A stretch of 62,231 nucleotides of DNA, filler included, from Choristocarpus tenellus KU-1152 (GCA_964200185.2; 10 parts of 10 records of this genome joined end to end with filler, not necessarily neighbours in it); one strand, 5' to 3'; positions 15,054 to 62,231 are shown, counted from the whole stretch's first letter. Numbers and translations are program-made. Notes: generated by a model not told the origin, from the letters alone.

Positions 15054-15673
15054 AGCAGCAGGTCCATGCACTGTGTAGTACAAATCTAGGGGAATAATTC
15101 CAACTTTTTCTGTTGGGGGGGGGGGAGGGAGTGGCAGGTTGTATAGTGCACACTTCAGAGGATAGCATTTGGTGAAGTTTATTGGGGGCTGGGGGTGGGA
15201 GGGGCAACATTGTAATACCTTACCTCAGCATGTTTTGGTGGAGCCTTGTGTTATCTTTCAGGGCCATAGTTCGGTAGTGTTTGAATAGAGTACAGAAGGT
15301 GAGAGCTTAGGTGAAAGACGGTTGCATCAATGGTCCCGTTCTGTTTCTGAAAAGGGTTCTGGCAGGAGAGCTCTTTTGTCAGGCGTGGGGAGGTGGATAA
15401 CAGCCTATTACAGGTAGTTTTAAAAGGGAAGTCCAGTGCCAAGAGCTGAGTAAATACTAACGTGTTTGGTACCATTGACGATCCACTTTTTCCTTCTCTT
15501 ACCATGGTGTACAGAGTAGTTTCCCCCCCCCCTGTTCTTGTTCCTTTCTTCCTTCCCCCCCAACAGTTACATGNNNNNNNNNNNNNNNNNNNNNNNNNNN
15601 NNNNNNNNNNNNNNNNNTTAATTAATTAANNNNNNNNNNNNNNNNNNNNNNNNNNNNNNNNNNNNNNNNNNNN

Positions 15674-17603
15674 TTGGAAGGGATAAGACTAAGTGTCGAG
15701 CAAGGATGATGAGTACGGTGGGTGCTGGAATGACCTCCACACATGAAGATTTGCGAGCAGGAGCAGCGACAGGGGCAGGGGCAAGGGCAGGGACTGAACC
15801 ATGCATTGCACCTCCAGTCCCGCCCAAGATAAAAGGGTGCATGGAAGTGCCAACTGGGGAGAACAGGGGCAAAGCGACCAGCACTCTTGGAGAAATAGAT
15901 TTGCATCCAGTGACACCAGCCTTCCAAGGGACAGGGAGTCCAGGGAGTCATGATTGTGATAAATATAGATGTGAAGGCTTGAACAAGCATGTCAATGATA
16001 ATGGCATCGATGACCGGAAGGGAGATTATAGAGGTAGGTGGATGATTGGTGCATGTGTCGTTCATTGTGCTATTCTAGGGGTAGTTTCATCTGTTTGTCT
16101 TAGCGTTTAGTACACCTTATTTCTTTCAAAAGAAATAAAATTCTTGTTGGTGTGTCAGAAGGCCTTTCCTGAAAGCAATACAGAACCTGCTACTTTCTTG
16201 TTTGTTGTATTCTTTGCTTAGTGTTTTTTGTTCCCTTCTCGACAGTAACTGCACAATGTGAGTGGATGTGATATTGTAATAAGATAATAGAATGATAGTA
16301 TGAAGAGACTAAGTTATGAATCTGTGATATGCTTAGTCTATGATATTTTGTAAAAATATGTCAACTGACATTTTCAGATGTTGTCGTGAAGGGAGTGAAG
16401 AGAATCGTATATCATAAACAATACAAACTAACTCGATGACAACAGAGTCTGTGCTGCTTACTCGAAGTTCCTTTGGATACACCCAGAAGAGTTAATCTTT
16501 CGGGACAGATAGTGTCACCAAGAACTCTGCAGGTAGCTCTCTCGTGGCATGTCATGCACTTAAGTGAAAGTGTCTTAGAGGATACGAGTTTTGCCCTGTT
16601 TGTCCATTTGGGGCTTGGCTTCCCATGGGTTTTTTTTAAGACATTTTCCTACTCCAAAGTGTTTAAGAGTAGCTATAATGCGTACGTCATGACCAGGTGT
16701 GTGTCTGGATCATGGATAGTGGCCCCCAAATGGACGCGGCTCTACCCTCTAAGATAGTTTGACTTACTTCAAGTTGCAGACATTGGATCAGTGGACAAGG
16801 AGGGGCCTCACATATTCTTGGTATTCTTTTATATTTTGCATCACGTTTTGGCCAACTTCGTAAGCTAGACTAGCTACGAGGATAGCAGTGTGAAATCATT
16901 TTGCAGGGAACAATACCACAGGTGGCATTGTTGCGTAGTCCGAAGTAGTTAGTACAAAATATGCACAACATTTTGTGGAAACAAATAATTTCTGTCCATG
17001 CAGACCATCGTTGGAGTGGTTGTTGCAGTTTCCTGCCTTGCTTTTGTTTGTCTTATCACTGCCCTGACACGTTTGCAGAATATCAGTTGGCATGGGTAAT
17101 AAAATACCCACCGACACACAGTTGTACTCGTATACGCTCTATTTACCATCCAATACCACTTTTTCAAAAATGGATTCCTATAGCATGATTGGTATTAGCT
17201 ATACCAAGCACAAAATCCGTAACTCCTCCCTTCTATCTGTTGCAATTTGGATGGTGGACTAGAACATGAGTCGAGCTCCCTCTCGTTGTCCTTGGAGCAG
17301 AAGAAGACTGAAAATCGAGGAATGGGACATGATTCAATGACAAGGTTGGTAGATAAGAATCCATGCGGAACGGTATTGTACCCTTGCAGCTCTGCAAAGA
17401 CTGAAGGGGCGTCAGGAAAGCCAAGACATGGGGAGCAAGAGAATAGAACAGAGGATGGACAGGGTGCTGTGAGGCAAGCATGCCCAACAATGGACGAATC
17501 ATCTTTCCCTCCTGGCTCAAAATCTGCCATAGACAAATTGATTGATGAAATCATCACCGCCAGTAGAGATGATGATACCATAAGGAGCCTCCTTGAAGAA
17601 CAG
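15674..17603 (+). CDS. Two low-complexity coding exons of an unknown gene, possibly the N-terminal part of the downstream ROCO gene
   Basis: Open frame from the contig start to about 16032 (AG|GTAGGT, phase 1) joins 17263-17603 (CAG|GTGAGG, phase 0). The phase matches the ROC exon at 21112, but a spacer intervenes. Confidence 0.5.
16562..16765. mobile_element. MITE family A, internally deleted copy
   Basis: TIRs present; perfect ACTT TSD (16558-16561, 16766-16769). Confidence 0.9.
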
Positions 17604-57424: not shown

Positions 57425-58364
57425 GCCAAAAACTAACAGCAATAAAAAAACAAAAAATAACAGACTCTCCGATTCACATTTCAACTATTATTTTTTTCTG
57501 TTTTGGACATGTACAATGAGATACTCAAAAACAAAAAAATATTAAGAGCACTCCATCGTCATATGCCTCTTTTTAGGAAAGATAATGTACACTAGGAGAC
57601 CCTCTGGGGGGGAGGGGGGTGAGGGTATTCACCAGTACCAGTAGAAAACCAGCACACCTTCACACCAAAAATAAAAATATGTTTTTCTTAAAAAAAGATT
57701 TGAAAAAAAGTTTTCTAAAAAGGTAAAAATAAAAATAAAAATCCTTTTTATAAAAAGGAAAAATGGACTGAGAGAGAGTCCCGTTAGTACAAATTTTGGC
57801 CGTTTCGAGTTCATTGTAATAATAATAATAATAGAGTTATTAACTTAGGTCTTTAACAAGAAGAGGATGTTAAAAGAAAACAAGGGTGCCAACAAGGACA
57901 ACTTGCTGTCGCCAAAAAACAACTGTTGAAAAGTACTCACAAAATAGACAAAAATACACTCCAAAGTTGTGCACCATCTGTGCCAAAAAATGTATGGCAA
58001 CTAAAGGGAAGAAGGGCCCTCAAAACTCAAATGCTTGAGTTTAACTTTGATTCAAAACAGACCCGTCAGTCAAGCTCTTTTTTTTTGGGGGGGGGGGGGN
58101 NNNNNNNNNNNNNNNNNNNNNNNNNNNNNNNNNNNNNNNNNNNTTAATTAATTAANNNNNNNNNNNNNNNNNNNNNNNNNNNNNNNNNNNNNNNNNNNNC
58201 ATGTAACGTCCCAAGTGCAGAGCAGTTTTGCAACAATCAATGAGGCGGTGCCGATAAATACGCTGACAGCATATTTGACAATTGAGGGGCGCATGGTGAC
58301 GTAAGGGTGCACAGGAGATACGGAAAAGGCAAAAAAAGAGAACCGCTGCAACTGCACCATTTAC

Positions 58365-60690
58365 CAACCTTTGGAGCTCTGGTGTCCACTTCTCCTTGGG
58401 CACAATCTGCCTGGTGCGCGAGATAAGCATCTCGGATATGTGCGCGTCCGATTCGATCTTCTTGTAGTCCCTTGCCGTAGGAGACTTCCCGTTGAACGAC
58501 TTGTACCTGCAAAAAAAGAGAATGGCAATGAAGGACGTCAACGAGAACGATGCGCAGGTAGTGATGAGTAGAGGGTCGCCACTGCAGAAAATAGTCTATG
58601 GAACGATTGTCGTAGTTCAGAAAAGACAAGAGCACACATACACAGGAAATACACACTGCAGGTAGTATTTCCACAGTACTACGAACGGTTTGTCGTTTGA
58701 TACAACAATGGCCGACTACATTCTTCATCGTAGGAGACACTTATAGAACGTTCCTGTACAAGGTGCTACGTCCGGCACACATGTCGCTTACTGCTCTCTA
58801 CACGATAAAACACAGTGGCGGTTTGACTTGCCTCGCAAGCAGACGGATGCATAGCCCCTGCTTGAGAGAAATGAAGCCGGCAAATTCCTCGCAACTCAGA
58901 TAGCTCAGTGTGACCACGTTGCAGTCGATCTGTGGTGACAAGGTCTCACACACTTCCTTCATTACCTCGAAGGACTCTGGTCGAAGGGACTTTACGTCTT
59001 CCTGCCAGTTTCGTAGAGTTGTTTTCGGCGGGGGAGGAACGTCCACCTTCGCGATTGGGGGAAAATGAAAAATATTATGCACCCAGACAGCCAGGATGAG
59101 GCATCGTTATTACCACGCCAACGAGGTATGTATGAGTGTGAGGGGGGTGTTTTTCAGCAGCCTGGTTCAACGATAAAACAAACAAGAACTCTTTTGATTT
59201 CTCGTGTGTATACAACACAGACACAGCATGTGGTTGCCCAGGAAGGAGAGGGTTTGGTTCGCAAAATGACGCATCGTATGTTTATTAATTCAGGCAACAC
59301 TGCAACGGCCCGGGCAAGGAGTGGACCTTACCCGGGGGGGGGGGGGGGGAGACGGTATGATATTCAGCGGCCTGGCCTACCTAGTGCTGAAAGAAAATAC
59401 TGTTCACTTTGTCTGAGATTTACCACACACACATACTACATGGTCACCTGAAAATCAATAATTTGGTTGACAGGGTTGCTAAACGCGGGACGACTATCTC
59501 AACTTAGGTTGAATAGGAGGACGCAGAGAGATTTCACAACAGCTGTAACCCAACAAGAGGAGGAGTAGAGCGCCACCATTCCACCATTGTTGACAACTCC
59601 TCACCATTTTGTACATTTTGCGGATCTCTGCTAGTGACACTTCTTTTTTCTTCGTCTGTTGCTTGATAGCTTCTTCGAGCTTGTGCTGAAAACATACCTT
59701 ATCGTACAGTGTGCACTCAATCACACTCTCGGCCGCGCCGTTCAATGCTATAAGCGTAGCGGTGCAGTGGGCGCATGGGGCAAGGGGTAGGTGGGAAGCA
59801 GTCGCTGGACACAAGCGGCAGGCACTAGTGAGCAACATGTTGCTGTTGACAGAAAGACCACGAGGGATAAAAAAGATCAACAACGGACTGACTGATGATA
59901 AATCAAGAGCCAAAGTATCTTAGAGGGTAAGGCCTCGTCCATTTGGAGTCAAAATCCGATGTTGTGATTTTGACGTAATTTTGGCTATCTTGTTTGTTGG
60001 GAAGTGTCAATATCCTTGTTCTGGACACACATTTCATGACTTACACATTTTACCTGCTTCGAAACATTTTGGAGTAGGAAAATGTCATAAAAACACGCCA
60101 TGGGAAGTCAAGCCCCAAATGGACAAACAGGGCAACACTCGTACCCTCTAAGATACTTTCACTCTCAAGAAAGGAAACACGGCAACAACTTGGTAGATCA
60201 GAAGAGTCATCAGGCGATCATGGAACATCGACAACACTCCATATCACAAACCGTTGGCAATTAGGCTCTCTTCTGCTTGGTTGAACTCCATATAGACCCG
60301 CATCATGAAAGCGCGTTCGGGATGAAACTCTCTCTTCAGCACTGTTATTCTATGGTTTCCGTCCAGTGTTCGTCCTTGAATGGCAAGCGCAGTTTCGGCA
60401 GTGAGCTGGTCTCAGATGCCTAAGCAGTCTCGTTGGATGACGATGTACCGAGCAAACTGCTCCAGCCAGCCTTTTTCACAGATGGACTTGCTGACACGCG
60501 CAAGCCCACGCTCACTCAGGGGACGCACCATCTCCATGCATGTGATTTTGCCGAGTTTCATCTGGTACGTGCCGAGGTAGTGATGTTCTAGGAGCGAGGA
60601 CATGCCCTTGACATTGCTGTACCACGCTCTCAATCCGTGGGCAGCGCCATCGGCGTGCAGGGGGGTCATTGCTGAGTGAATGTTGGACAT
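58365..60690 (-). pseudogene. Spliced ParB/Sulfiredoxin-like domain + HTH gene with one in-frame TGA; 3' end lost in gap
   Basis: Exons 60690-60252, 59747-59605, 59046-58832 (GC donor AG|GCAAGT), 58506-58365, all phase-consistent. VRPLSERGLARVSKSICEKGWL...TLDGNHRITVL...LIANALN...TLYDK resembles the ParB N-domain; SLAEIRKMY...KTTLRNWQ resembles an HTH. TGA at 60412-60414. Confidence 0.75.
59907..60164. mobile_element. MITE family A inserted in intron 1 of the ParB-like gene
   Basis: GAGCCAAAGTATCTTAGAGGGTA ... TACCCTCTAAGATACTTTCACTC; perfect TCAA TSD. Confidence 0.93.
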
Positions 60691-60849
60691 GGCGAAGATT
60701 GGGAGGGTGTGACGGGGATAGATAAGTAAGAGGTGCTGGTGGTATGTACGGAAGGGAAGGAATGGAAATGAGGAGTGAGGGCTGTGTTGTGCTGCTTTAT
60801 TTCATCTGGTCAGTCGGTCCCCAAAGAACTCAGATTCTCTTTCCGTTCA

Positions 60850-61625
60850 TAATTGTGTTACAAAAATACGAATATCGAACATCATACGATTTCATATTTA
60901 AAAGATATAGAGAGTATCAGCTTTTTGTTACATTTTCGTTTCGGTACGTTTCGAACGTATTAGATAAATGAAGTATTTGGTCTGTGTTTTTATTTGTTGA
61001 TATTAAGAATAGAATATTTTTATTATTTCGTAAAACCCTAAAGCACGTGTTTTGGCTGTTCAATGGTTTCGGGTGACCCGAAACTCAAGTACTGCTTTTT
61101 GTCGACTCAAGGGTTTTGAAAAATTCTGAAGTCGACAAAAAGCGGTTTTAGTATTTAAATAAATTGTAGGGTATTAGTTGAAAGTGACCTTTTAGTTTCG
61201 GAACATTGGAAACGTTTGAGACGTATAAAGTACGTGCTTTGTATTTTTTTAAATTGTAAGAACGGTTATAATCGGATTTACTATTTGTAAAAATCCTAAT
61301 GCACGTGTTTTGGCGGTCGAAGGGTTTCGGGTGATCGGACGGATCACCCGAGACTCAACAGCCGCTTTTTGTCGACTCTAGTATTTTTAGAAATACAAAT
61401 GTCGAACAATATAAGATTTTGTATTTAAAACAATCAGAGTTTTTTTTTTTACCTTTTGGTCTAGTAACATTGGAAACATACAAGATCAATGAAGTATGTG
61501 CTTTGTATTTAAAAAAAATGGAAGTACAGATATAATCGGATTTACAACTTCTAAAAACCATAATGCACATATTTGCCGGATCATGGATCTCAGGGTGTTC
61601 CGACGGATCGCCCGAAGCTCGAATA
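60850..61625. repeat. About 3 diverged ~260-bp tandem repeats carrying palindromes
   Basis: Anchor TAA(A/T)GCAC at 61043, 61301 and 61565 (periods 258 and 264). Shared blocks ACCTTTT, AACATTGGAAAC, GTGCTTTGTATTT, TATAATCGGATTTAC, GCTTTTTGTCGACTC. Confidence 0.85.
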
Positions 61626-61705
61626 TCGTTCATGCGCCCGGCTTCAAATTCAATTCACTCCTAGACCTTCTCACTGCCCAAGACGGCCTGTTGCCCGAAA
61701 ACACC

Positions 61706-62182
61706 ATGACAGTTGCTCCCACAGCAAGGGGGTGGCTTTTGTCACCTGCACCGCCCCCTGTGTTGCCCCCTCATCAGCCCGCCAACAATGATGTGCTGGA
61801 GCATTCTACCAACGACGCTTCAGCGACCGGACGCCAAGCTTCGCCGAGGATGGGCTCAACCCATCCCGGTCAACGAACAGGGTGACTGCTGCAAGCGCCT
61901 AGCCTGTGTGAAGAAGTTCGCGGCAGATAGCGAGTCCTTCCTTGCCCGCATGTTGGTCAAAGAGCAGGACATCATCCGGGCGTGTGAGAACCACCGCGAT
62001 CGCAAGCACTTCGTTGGTGACCGTGTACCTGTCATTAAGTTGGGACCAGGAGGCAGATCTATGCTCAGGGTCGGCATTCCCGTTTGTACGCAGGTTTTCA
62101 AGGCATCGTTCGGAATATCCAATCTTGTCATCGACGCTTGCAAAGGTACACCTAACGCTAGAGCATCCTCCGGCGTGGAGAG
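61706..62182 (+). pseudogene. First exon of a probable DNA-transposon protein (Sola/DUF7869-like Cys-rich N-terminus), probably frameshifted
   Basis: CACCATG at 61706 opens a Pro-rich frame; the overlapping frame gives DCCKRLACVKKF...VCTQVFKASFGIS; donor AG|GTGGGT at 62182. The family call is from motif recollection, and the catalytic domain would lie outside the window. Confidence 0.5.
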
Positions 62183-62231
62183 GTGGGTTTGATGTATGTA
62201 CACAGTGGTATCTGTACCCGTTATATTTTCC

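Follow-up and report, generated by a model that had tools for sequence, protein, structure and literature searches.

A probable degenerate giant Sola1 transposon of Choristocarpus tenellus with a ParB/Srx-fold accessory gene head to head with the transposase gene

The window analysed here, 62,231 nucleotides of Choristocarpus tenellus DNA joined from ten parts, ends with a piece (58200-62231; guanine-plus-cytosine (GC) content 46.7%) that is very probably the central part of a degenerate giant cut-and-paste transposon of the Sola1 superfamily. A transposase gene on the plus strand and an accessory gene on the minus strand, the latter with a predicted ParB/Srx-fold domain, diverge from a spacer of about 1 kb. 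The nearest public copies of the piece lie in Choristocarpus tenellus, and the proteins closest to it are products of this brown alga. The copy is dead, and the contig cuts both genes; it is a truncated pseudogene pair. For this reading, we queried the exons of the piece one by one and used natural intact paralogues for whole-domain searches.

The gene pair recurs in a multi-copy family and in other brown algae

L001, a Choristocarpus locus, is colinear with positions 59340-62230 at 87-91% identity, and both genes and the repeat array of the spacer are covered. L003 and L010 are further copies at 73-85% identity, and the three loci belong to one assembly. In three runs of one study, 27,448 (run X1), 20,051, and 4,385 contigs lie on the piece at 85-99% identity. 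The run contigs fall on every part of it, introns and spacer included; therefore, the piece belongs to a high-copy repeat family at the DNA level.

The head-to-head pair is present in five other loci. Two of them, L001 and L010, are of the same family as the piece. The others are L007, from a Logan run, at about 64% amino-acid identity; L006, from Sphacelaria rigidula, at about 35%; and L008, from an ENA assembly with proteins close to Ectocarpus P0148, at about 30%. The accessory gene and the transposase gene both have a ratio of nonsynonymous to synonymous substitution rates (Ka/Ks) of about 0.2 when compared with L007; in the comparison with L001, a close copy, the values are 0.78 and 0.42, respectively. 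This contrast is the pattern of genes that are selected in active lineages and decay after insertion. The comparisons show a gene pair that is conserved under purifying selection across deeply diverged brown-algal elements. Two more loci, L004 and L011, carry the ParB-like gene with no detectable transposase within 10 kb and are taken for deleted or non-autonomous copies.

In one relative, the ends of the element are visible. L008 and L009 merge into a single stretch (ENA ERZ26962164, ctg213869; L008, 1-18260), in which both genes lie within an element of 18,350 bp bounded by terminal inverted repeats (TIRs). The TIRs are about 900 bp long and imperfect, with the first 112 nt 98% identical and the termini AACAG…CTGTT. 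The original prediction of a two-gene mobile element is thus borne out by the multiple copies, by the recurrence of the pair in other brown algae, and by the TIR-enclosed relative.

The Sola1 element of L008/L009 is apparently young. Its TIRs contain a 129-bp tandem duplication, its transposase and ParB-like genes are multi-exon, and it holds additional conserved open reading frames (ORFs) with acidic tails.

The plus-strand gene is assigned to the Sola1 transposases

Judged by its motifs and by the downstream exons of a relative, the plus-strand gene is a Sola1-superfamily DDD transposase gene. The supplement of a 2025 Ectocarpus paper prints the sequence of the Sola1-1_Ec32 transposase (PMC12477816), and the blocks NEQ…CC..C..F, REDRKRFV..HVP, GSMIAAG.PVCN..F, CKGT..A.AS, and GDFM.C..C are shared with it in the same order. 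The first exon, which encodes the N-terminal CC…C / VC…F…FGIS domain, spans 61706-62182 on the plus strand, with the ATG at 61706 and a GT donor at 62183. The one close relative of this exon is P0003 (62% identity, E 7e-39), and the contig of P0003, L002, shows the next exon with GDFMKCDLC, from which the GDFM.C..C block comes. An atlas search with the plus-strand ORF returns only unnamed eukaryotic clusters.

An extra A at 61831 is missing from most run copies and from the paralogues L001 and L010. This 1-nt insertion shifts the frame; therefore, the Cys-rich ORF seems to begin later, in another frame. In accordance, the Cys-rich ORF predicted about 1 kb from the accessory gene is real, but its predicted start is shifted relative to the true ATG at 61706.

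The homologous minus-strand gene of L008 is detected by tblastn at E 1e-9 to 3e-19, and its downstream exons match Pfam DUF7869 (E 5.4e-21 and 4e-4). There, L008 reads VDNCGSENKN…VGHTHIKIDQAFS, versus VDNTVAENKN…VGHTHIQIDQIFS in the Ectocarpus protein, the pattern being VDN..ENKN…GHTH.IDQ. The Sola1-1_Ec32 motifs and the DUF7869 match in this relative agree with the transposase-like character that had been proposed for the gene.

The accessory protein has a predicted ParB/Srx fold

The ParB/Srx signature on which the original prediction was built is upheld. The motifs VRPLS..SI.EKGW and LDGNHR are present in the minus-strand gene, and a profile search of 1.84 billion representatives yields 101 HMMER relatives, nearly all of them short ORF fragments on eukaryotic-looking contigs. 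In an alignment of 84 family sequences, G111 is invariant, D110, H113, R114, G62, and G74 are nearly so, and DGNHR as a whole is almost invariant. The residues D110-G111-N112-H113-R114 and R56 are conserved in 72 to 84 of the 84 sequences; they are equated with box II and box I, respectively, by motif pattern only.

The structure was predicted for an intact exon-1 paralogue, L001:1975-2418, with the 84-sequence alignment. The AlphaFold2 model has a predicted local distance difference test score (pLDDT) of 86.7 and a predicted template modelling score (pTM) of 0.75; with a 5-row alignment, the pLDDT was 39.7 and the model was of no use. When the model is searched with Foldseek against the PDB, all of the 50 top matches have the ParB/Srx fold (PadC, CDP/CTPγS-bound ParB, Noc, KorB, sulfiredoxin, SbnI, and serine kinase). 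VIA gives Z scores of 9.5-8.8 for Noc, ParB, and PadC, at a root-mean-square deviation (rmsd) of 2.3-2.7 Å over about 90 residues. Among the 30 named language-model neighbours in the atlas, 22 are clusters with ParB_N in 11-12% of their members, and the shape matches to the model include ParB_N clusters. On the basis of the model, we accept that the N-terminal domain adopts the ParB/Srx fold.

Pfam, run on each exon of the piece and on intact paralogues, reports no ParB_N, helix-turn-helix (HTH), or transposase domain. Sub-threshold Pfam matches occur in 20 of the 84 members, to GmrSD_N (8), DUF1015 (5), DndB (3), ddrB-ParB (2), and also DUF6551, all of which we take to be members or allies of the ParB clan; these matches agree with the two independent leads from the atlas. 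Curated models overlook the domain, which forms a divergent ParB/Srx lineage. The protein can be placed in the fold superfamily but not, on this evidence, among the CTP-clamp ParB proteins; the motif reads DGNHR and not GERRxR.

Residues 50-97 of L001:1975-2418, which include the SI..GW helix, have a faint Pfam match to RHS_N (E 0.064), the N-terminal domain of trypanosome retrotransposon hot spot proteins. This match may be due to chance or may reflect another divergent ParB-like domain.

The accessory gene extends beyond the contig edge

The accessory gene starts with an ATG at 60690 on the minus strand. Exon 1 (60252-60690) holds the ParB/Srx-fold domain, with the LDGNHR motif at about 60354-60371, and its end is supported by a spliced contig. 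Intron 1 (59748-60251) has GT..AG borders and carries a nested miniature inverted-repeat transposable element (MITE). Exon 2 (59605-59747; …LNGAAESVIECTLYDKV…RKMYKM) matches P0009 and P0132, exon 3 (58832-59046; VDVPPPPKTTLRNW…LLAR) matches P0132, and exon 4 (58369-58506; YKSFNGK…WTPELQ) is followed by a donor site, AG|GTTGGT. Therefore, the gene has more than four exons and runs past the contig edge at 58200, which cuts it. The four-exon gene of the original prediction is real in its position and exons, but these are only the first four of a longer gene.

In run X3, contigs occur from which intron 1 is removed, with the joint 59747/60252 (CT..AC on the plus strand), and from which intron 3 is removed, with the joint 58505/58835, where the four letters between are exon ends. 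These joined forms hint at transcription of family members or else at processed copies. The exon boundaries agree with those of annotated spliced paralogues, P0132 of Choristocarpus and P0009 and P0036 of Sphacelaria. In this copy, intron 3 has an apparent GC-AG splice site (AG|GCAAGT, 58831-58826). Intron 2 contains a G16 homopolymer at 59334-59349, and run-contig coverage is lowest around there (59145-59414).

Exon 5 and the exons beyond it are kept in L005, L007, L008, and L010. L011, from Ectocarpus sp. CCAP 1310/34, contains P0148 (362 aa) and, downstream of it on the same strand, a model of 589 aa, the exons of which are conserved in L008, in L005 of Sphacelaria, and in L010 of Choristocarpus. 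To judge from these sequences, the accessory gene of the piece probably also has this distal part past the contig edge. Within L011 10001-18273, the annotation splits what is apparently one long accessory gene into P0148 and the 589-aa model, and a tandem duplication of a segment (…NRRVVVSDVFGHS…) lies at about 15,500-16,100.

The spacer contains a family-specific palindromic array

The spacer measures 1015 bp from ATG to ATG, of which 774 bp are a repeat array, as had been predicted for a spacer of about 1 kb made mostly of roughly 260-bp repeats with inverted repeats. The array (60860-61633) consists of about 3.3 degenerate units of about 258-265 bp at 66-81% identity. Its GC content is 34%, versus 48-56% in the flanking spacer and 53-57% in the exons. 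The unit consensus includes two long palindromes, GTTTCGGGTGATCCG / CGGATCACCCGAAAC and ACCGCTTTTTGTCGAC … GTCGACAAAAAGCGGT. In unit 1, the palindrome GCTTTTTGTCGAC…GTCGACAAAAAGC lies at 61091-61146, with a degenerate copy at 61362-61410. In unit 2, the palindrome …GTTTCGGGTGATC/GATCACCCGAGAC… lies at 61313-61365, with a shorter perfect form at 61066-61084 and a degenerate one at about 61590-61625. The arm GCTTTTTGTCGAC has 3 matches versus 0.00 expected and the arm TTTCGGGTGATC has 6 versus 0.38 expected, far above chance.

The array is present in closely related copies only, that is, in L001 and in part in L010. L001 carries one unit more, so that the unit number differs between copies; Tandem Repeats Finder at its thresholds missed the array in the piece and detected it in L001. 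The equivalent spacers of L007, L006, and L008, in which both genes are kept, have no such repeats or palindromes. Therefore, the array, which is confined to the Choristocarpus-type family, does not belong to the conserved module of two genes, and the comparison of loci lends no support to loading of the ParB-like protein on the palindromes. The proposed co-occurrence check by tblastn accordingly divides: both genes recur together in multiple loci, the array only in the closely related copies. The array is a family-specific feature of the spacer; it may have arisen as regulatory or binding sites multiplied in this lineage. The earlier proposal that the ParB-like protein binds the intergenic palindromes is not supported; such binding is speculation, possible as a lineage-specific arrangement.

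Alternative explanations

Several observations weigh against a Sola1 transposon with a ParB/Srx-fold accessory gene, the lack of the array from the more distant spacers among them. The 4-kb contig of the piece shows no TIR or target-site duplication (TSD). A check of the boundaries, proposed with the original prediction and done on L008/L009, finds TIRs that enclose both genes but no clean 4-bp TSD in the one copy examined (flanks, AACC versus AATA). The piece holds only exon 1 of the transposase gene, so that the catalytic core is inferred from relatives, and the motif comparison with Sola1-1_Ec32_tpase was made by eye, with no computed alignment. As to the accessory protein, the best Foldseek E-value (4.9e-4, TM about 0.5) is modest. 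Pfam ParB_N gives no match even at E ≤ 10 with the exons of the piece and the intact exon 1 of L001. PDB sequence searches with single sequences and profiles find no ParB; their matches are spurious, for example to phycocyanin through a DGNKR coincidence, with SbnI at E 0.85. In the residues after the N-terminal domain, neither Pfam nor PDB sequence search finds an HTH or dimerisation domain.

The contig with neither TIR nor TSD would also suit two ordinary host genes that share a bidirectional promoter, or an integrated giant-virus fragment, with no transposon involved; brown algae harbour many viral insertions. Such an origin is hardly credible in the face of thousands of diverged copies that include introns and spacer, several paralogous contigs in one assembly, a TIR-bounded relative, and a gene assigned to the Sola1 transposases, and we regard it as refuted for practical purposes. 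A viral origin was in addition rejected on an IMG/VR scan with the transposase exon, which found no relative. Granted a Sola1 transposon, the ParB/Srx-fold domain could work as an enzyme, a nuclease or kinase/phosphotransferase, rather than clamp DNA in the manner of ParB. The scores of sulfiredoxin, SbnI, and free serine kinase (Z 7-8.7) fall little short of those of ParB, the motif is DGNHR instead of GERRxR, the weak Pfam matches are to GmrSD_N and DndB and not to ParB_N, and an HTH is not detected by sequence. However, CTP-bound ParB, Noc, and PadC match the structure best, DGNHR has N in place of the catalytic Cys of sulfiredoxin, and the location in a transposon, opposite the transposase, suits a DNA-directed role; we consider an enzymatic function possible but less likely than not.

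Two further questions concern what the accessory protein does and whether the array has to do with it. The Ectocarpus Sola1-1 accessory protein is described as a ParB-like and DNA methyltransferase protein of 1104 aa (PMC12477816), and the piece may hold only the ParB end of this protein, which would then bind the DNA of its own element and methylate it. Such a reading is more a refinement of the explanation preferred here than a competitor to it, and we consider it quite possible, though somewhat short of an even chance. The arrangement is the same, with the accessory gene and a Sola1 transposase gene on opposite strands; Ectocarpus sp. CCAP 1310/34 has a family member, P0148, followed by the 589-aa model; the downstream exons are common to L010, L005, L008, and L011; and only one Sola-1 family is listed for Ectocarpus (PMC12477816). 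Against it, Pfam and PDB sequence searches, exon by exon, find no methyltransferase in the downstream exons of L005 and L008, a DPPM string in L005 is not kept in other loci, and the supplement terms the gene 'Ectocarpus specific' (PMC12477816), whereas the family here is widespread. The chances are about equal that the array is unrelated to the ParB-like protein, being either a satellite-like expansion in the spacer of one family or what is left there of a nested non-autonomous element. Its absence from the equivalent spacers of L007, L006, and L008, its low GC content relative to the flanking spacer and the exons, and the varying unit number speak for this, and fixed nested insertions are reported in giant algal transposons. 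On the other hand, the palindromes are retained in several units of two copies about 13% apart, and red-algal Plavaka families are reported to have inverted-repeat arrays beside their ParB-domain accessory genes.

Proposed roles and comparison with known systems

In intact copies of the Sola1 transposon, the DDD transposase would excise and re-insert the element at its TIRs. The accessory protein is inferred to bind nucleotides and to associate with DNA, its target being the element itself; the box-I-like Arg and the GxxR-like DGNHR motif are retained. It might control transcription from the divergent promoter or serve to mark, compact, or pair copies of the element's DNA. This role matches the published proposal for the ParB-like proteins of Ectocarpus Sola1-1 and Plavaka.

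ParB-like accessory genes in giant algal transposons were already published in 2025 (PMC12477816; 10.1101/2025.02.11.637652). What is added here concerns the age and spread of the partnership, which is old and occurs widely in brown algae (Choristocarpus, Sphacelaria, and Ectocarpus) rather than in Ectocarpus alone. Sola1-1_Ec32 (PMC12477816) has a homologous transposase, a ParB-like accessory gene on the opposite strand, a brown-algal host, and copies that are mostly degenerate. Its size (21.5 kb versus 18.3 kb in L008/L009) and its termini (AACCG…CGGTT versus AACAG…CTGTT) are similar to those of that relative, and both have long imperfect TIRs (282 bp versus about 900 bp). Its published accessory protein is described as carrying a methyltransferase and noted as Ectocarpus-specific; in the family described here, no methyltransferase is detected in the conserved downstream exons, members are found in all three genera, and the ParB domain is not recognised by Pfam. 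The palindromic spacer array of about 265-bp units has no counterpart mentioned for Sola1-1_Ec32.

In the red-algal Plavaka (KDZ) transposons of a Bostrychia preprint, PAG3 has a ParB-homologous N-terminal domain, for which binding to its own element is proposed, and is adjoined by tandem inverted-repeat arrays across Plavaka families (10.1101/2025.02.11.637652). In both systems, a giant DNA transposon carries an accessory gene with a ParB-type N-terminal domain and inverted-repeat arrays beside that gene. PAG3 differs in its superfamily (Plavaka/KDZ), its red-algal host, and its fusion to a 2-oxoglutarate-dependent oxygenase; unlike the PAG3 arrays, the array described here is not conserved across related elements.

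The bacterial and plasmid ParB CTPases (ParB/Spo0J, Noc, KorB, and PadC) share the fold of the modelled N-terminal domain (Z about 9, rmsd 2.3-2.7 Å) and, by pattern, an Arg before the SI…G helix and G-x-x-R at the position of GERR. The accessory protein differs from them in its identity of 10-21%, in DGNHR in place of GERRxR, in its spliced eukaryotic gene, and in having no recognisable HTH_ParB or C-terminal dimerisation domain and no ParA partner. Chlorophyte and chytrid proteins that combine a ParB-HTH with a Dam-type methyltransferase (Iyer, Zhang & Aravind 2016; PMC4738411) are likewise eukaryotic, with a ParB-derived module of prokaryotic or phage origin that is tied to DNA modification. 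There, however, the ParB part is described as the HTH, fused to a recognisable methyltransferase, whereas the part found here is the ParB/Srx N-domain, with no methyltransferase detected.

One of the closest shape matches of the model in the atlas is to a cluster of fungal DUF3723 proteins (TM 0.70 by query, 128 residues, rmsd 2.8 Å), and two family members have faint Pfam DUF3723 matches (E 0.06); the likeness consists of one quick-search row and these sub-threshold sequence matches. DUF3723 is a conserved accessory gene of the fungal Starship giant transposons and is in this respect like the gene described here. Starships differ in that they move by a tyrosine recombinase and not by a DDD transposase. 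The Starship paper links DUF3723 to proteins of the structural maintenance of chromosomes (SMC) type, not to ParB, and in the literature searched DUF3723 and ParB are not mentioned together. That Starship DUF3723 may share a ParB-type fold is a lead, not a result.

Choristocarpus is an early-branching brown alga. It is conceivable, if doubtful, that the ParB/Srx accessory is an ancient, obligatory partner of Sola1 throughout brown algae and part of a wider, so far unrecognised ParB-fold 'element-maintenance' class that takes in Sola1, PAG3, and DUF3723, from giant eukaryotic transposons that move by unrelated mechanisms. If so, this class would be a eukaryotic counterpart of the ParB/KorB of plasmids and of integrative and conjugative elements. 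The pairing with a ParB-fold protein bears on the roles of the accessory genes of giant algal and fungal DNA transposons and suggests that a prokaryote-style nucleotide-dependent DNA-binding module is used by the element on its own DNA; in the published examples, the ParB module is fused to DNA-modifying enzymes. The dead copy in the piece is without direct functional importance, and intact paralogues such as P0132 exist for biochemistry.

Decay of this copy and the nested MITE

The copy is dead because of an in-frame nonsense TGA in exon 1 of the accessory gene (60412-60414, minus strand), the frameshifted transposase exon, the MITE in intron 1, and an identity to L001 that is alike in introns, exons, and spacer: 88.8% in intron 2 (59340-59885), 86.7% in exon 1 and most of the array, and 91.1% in the transposase-exon block. 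The TGA had been predicted to split the ParB domain together with the introns, and it is confirmed as a nonsense mutation specific to this copy; at this codon, L001 has Gly (GGA) and P0132 has Leu. Selenocysteine insertion or other recoding at the TGA was rejected on account of these paralogues.

The MITE (59906-60165) is 260 bp long, with 24-nt TIRs, AGAG[CT][CG]AAAGTATCTTAGAGGGTA. It is missing at this site in L001 and L010, and other copies lie in a different intron of L010 (3929-4197) and in L003. Summed over the MITE, contig depth reaches 40-100 times the value elsewhere in the piece, and many joints suggest tandem or nested copies.

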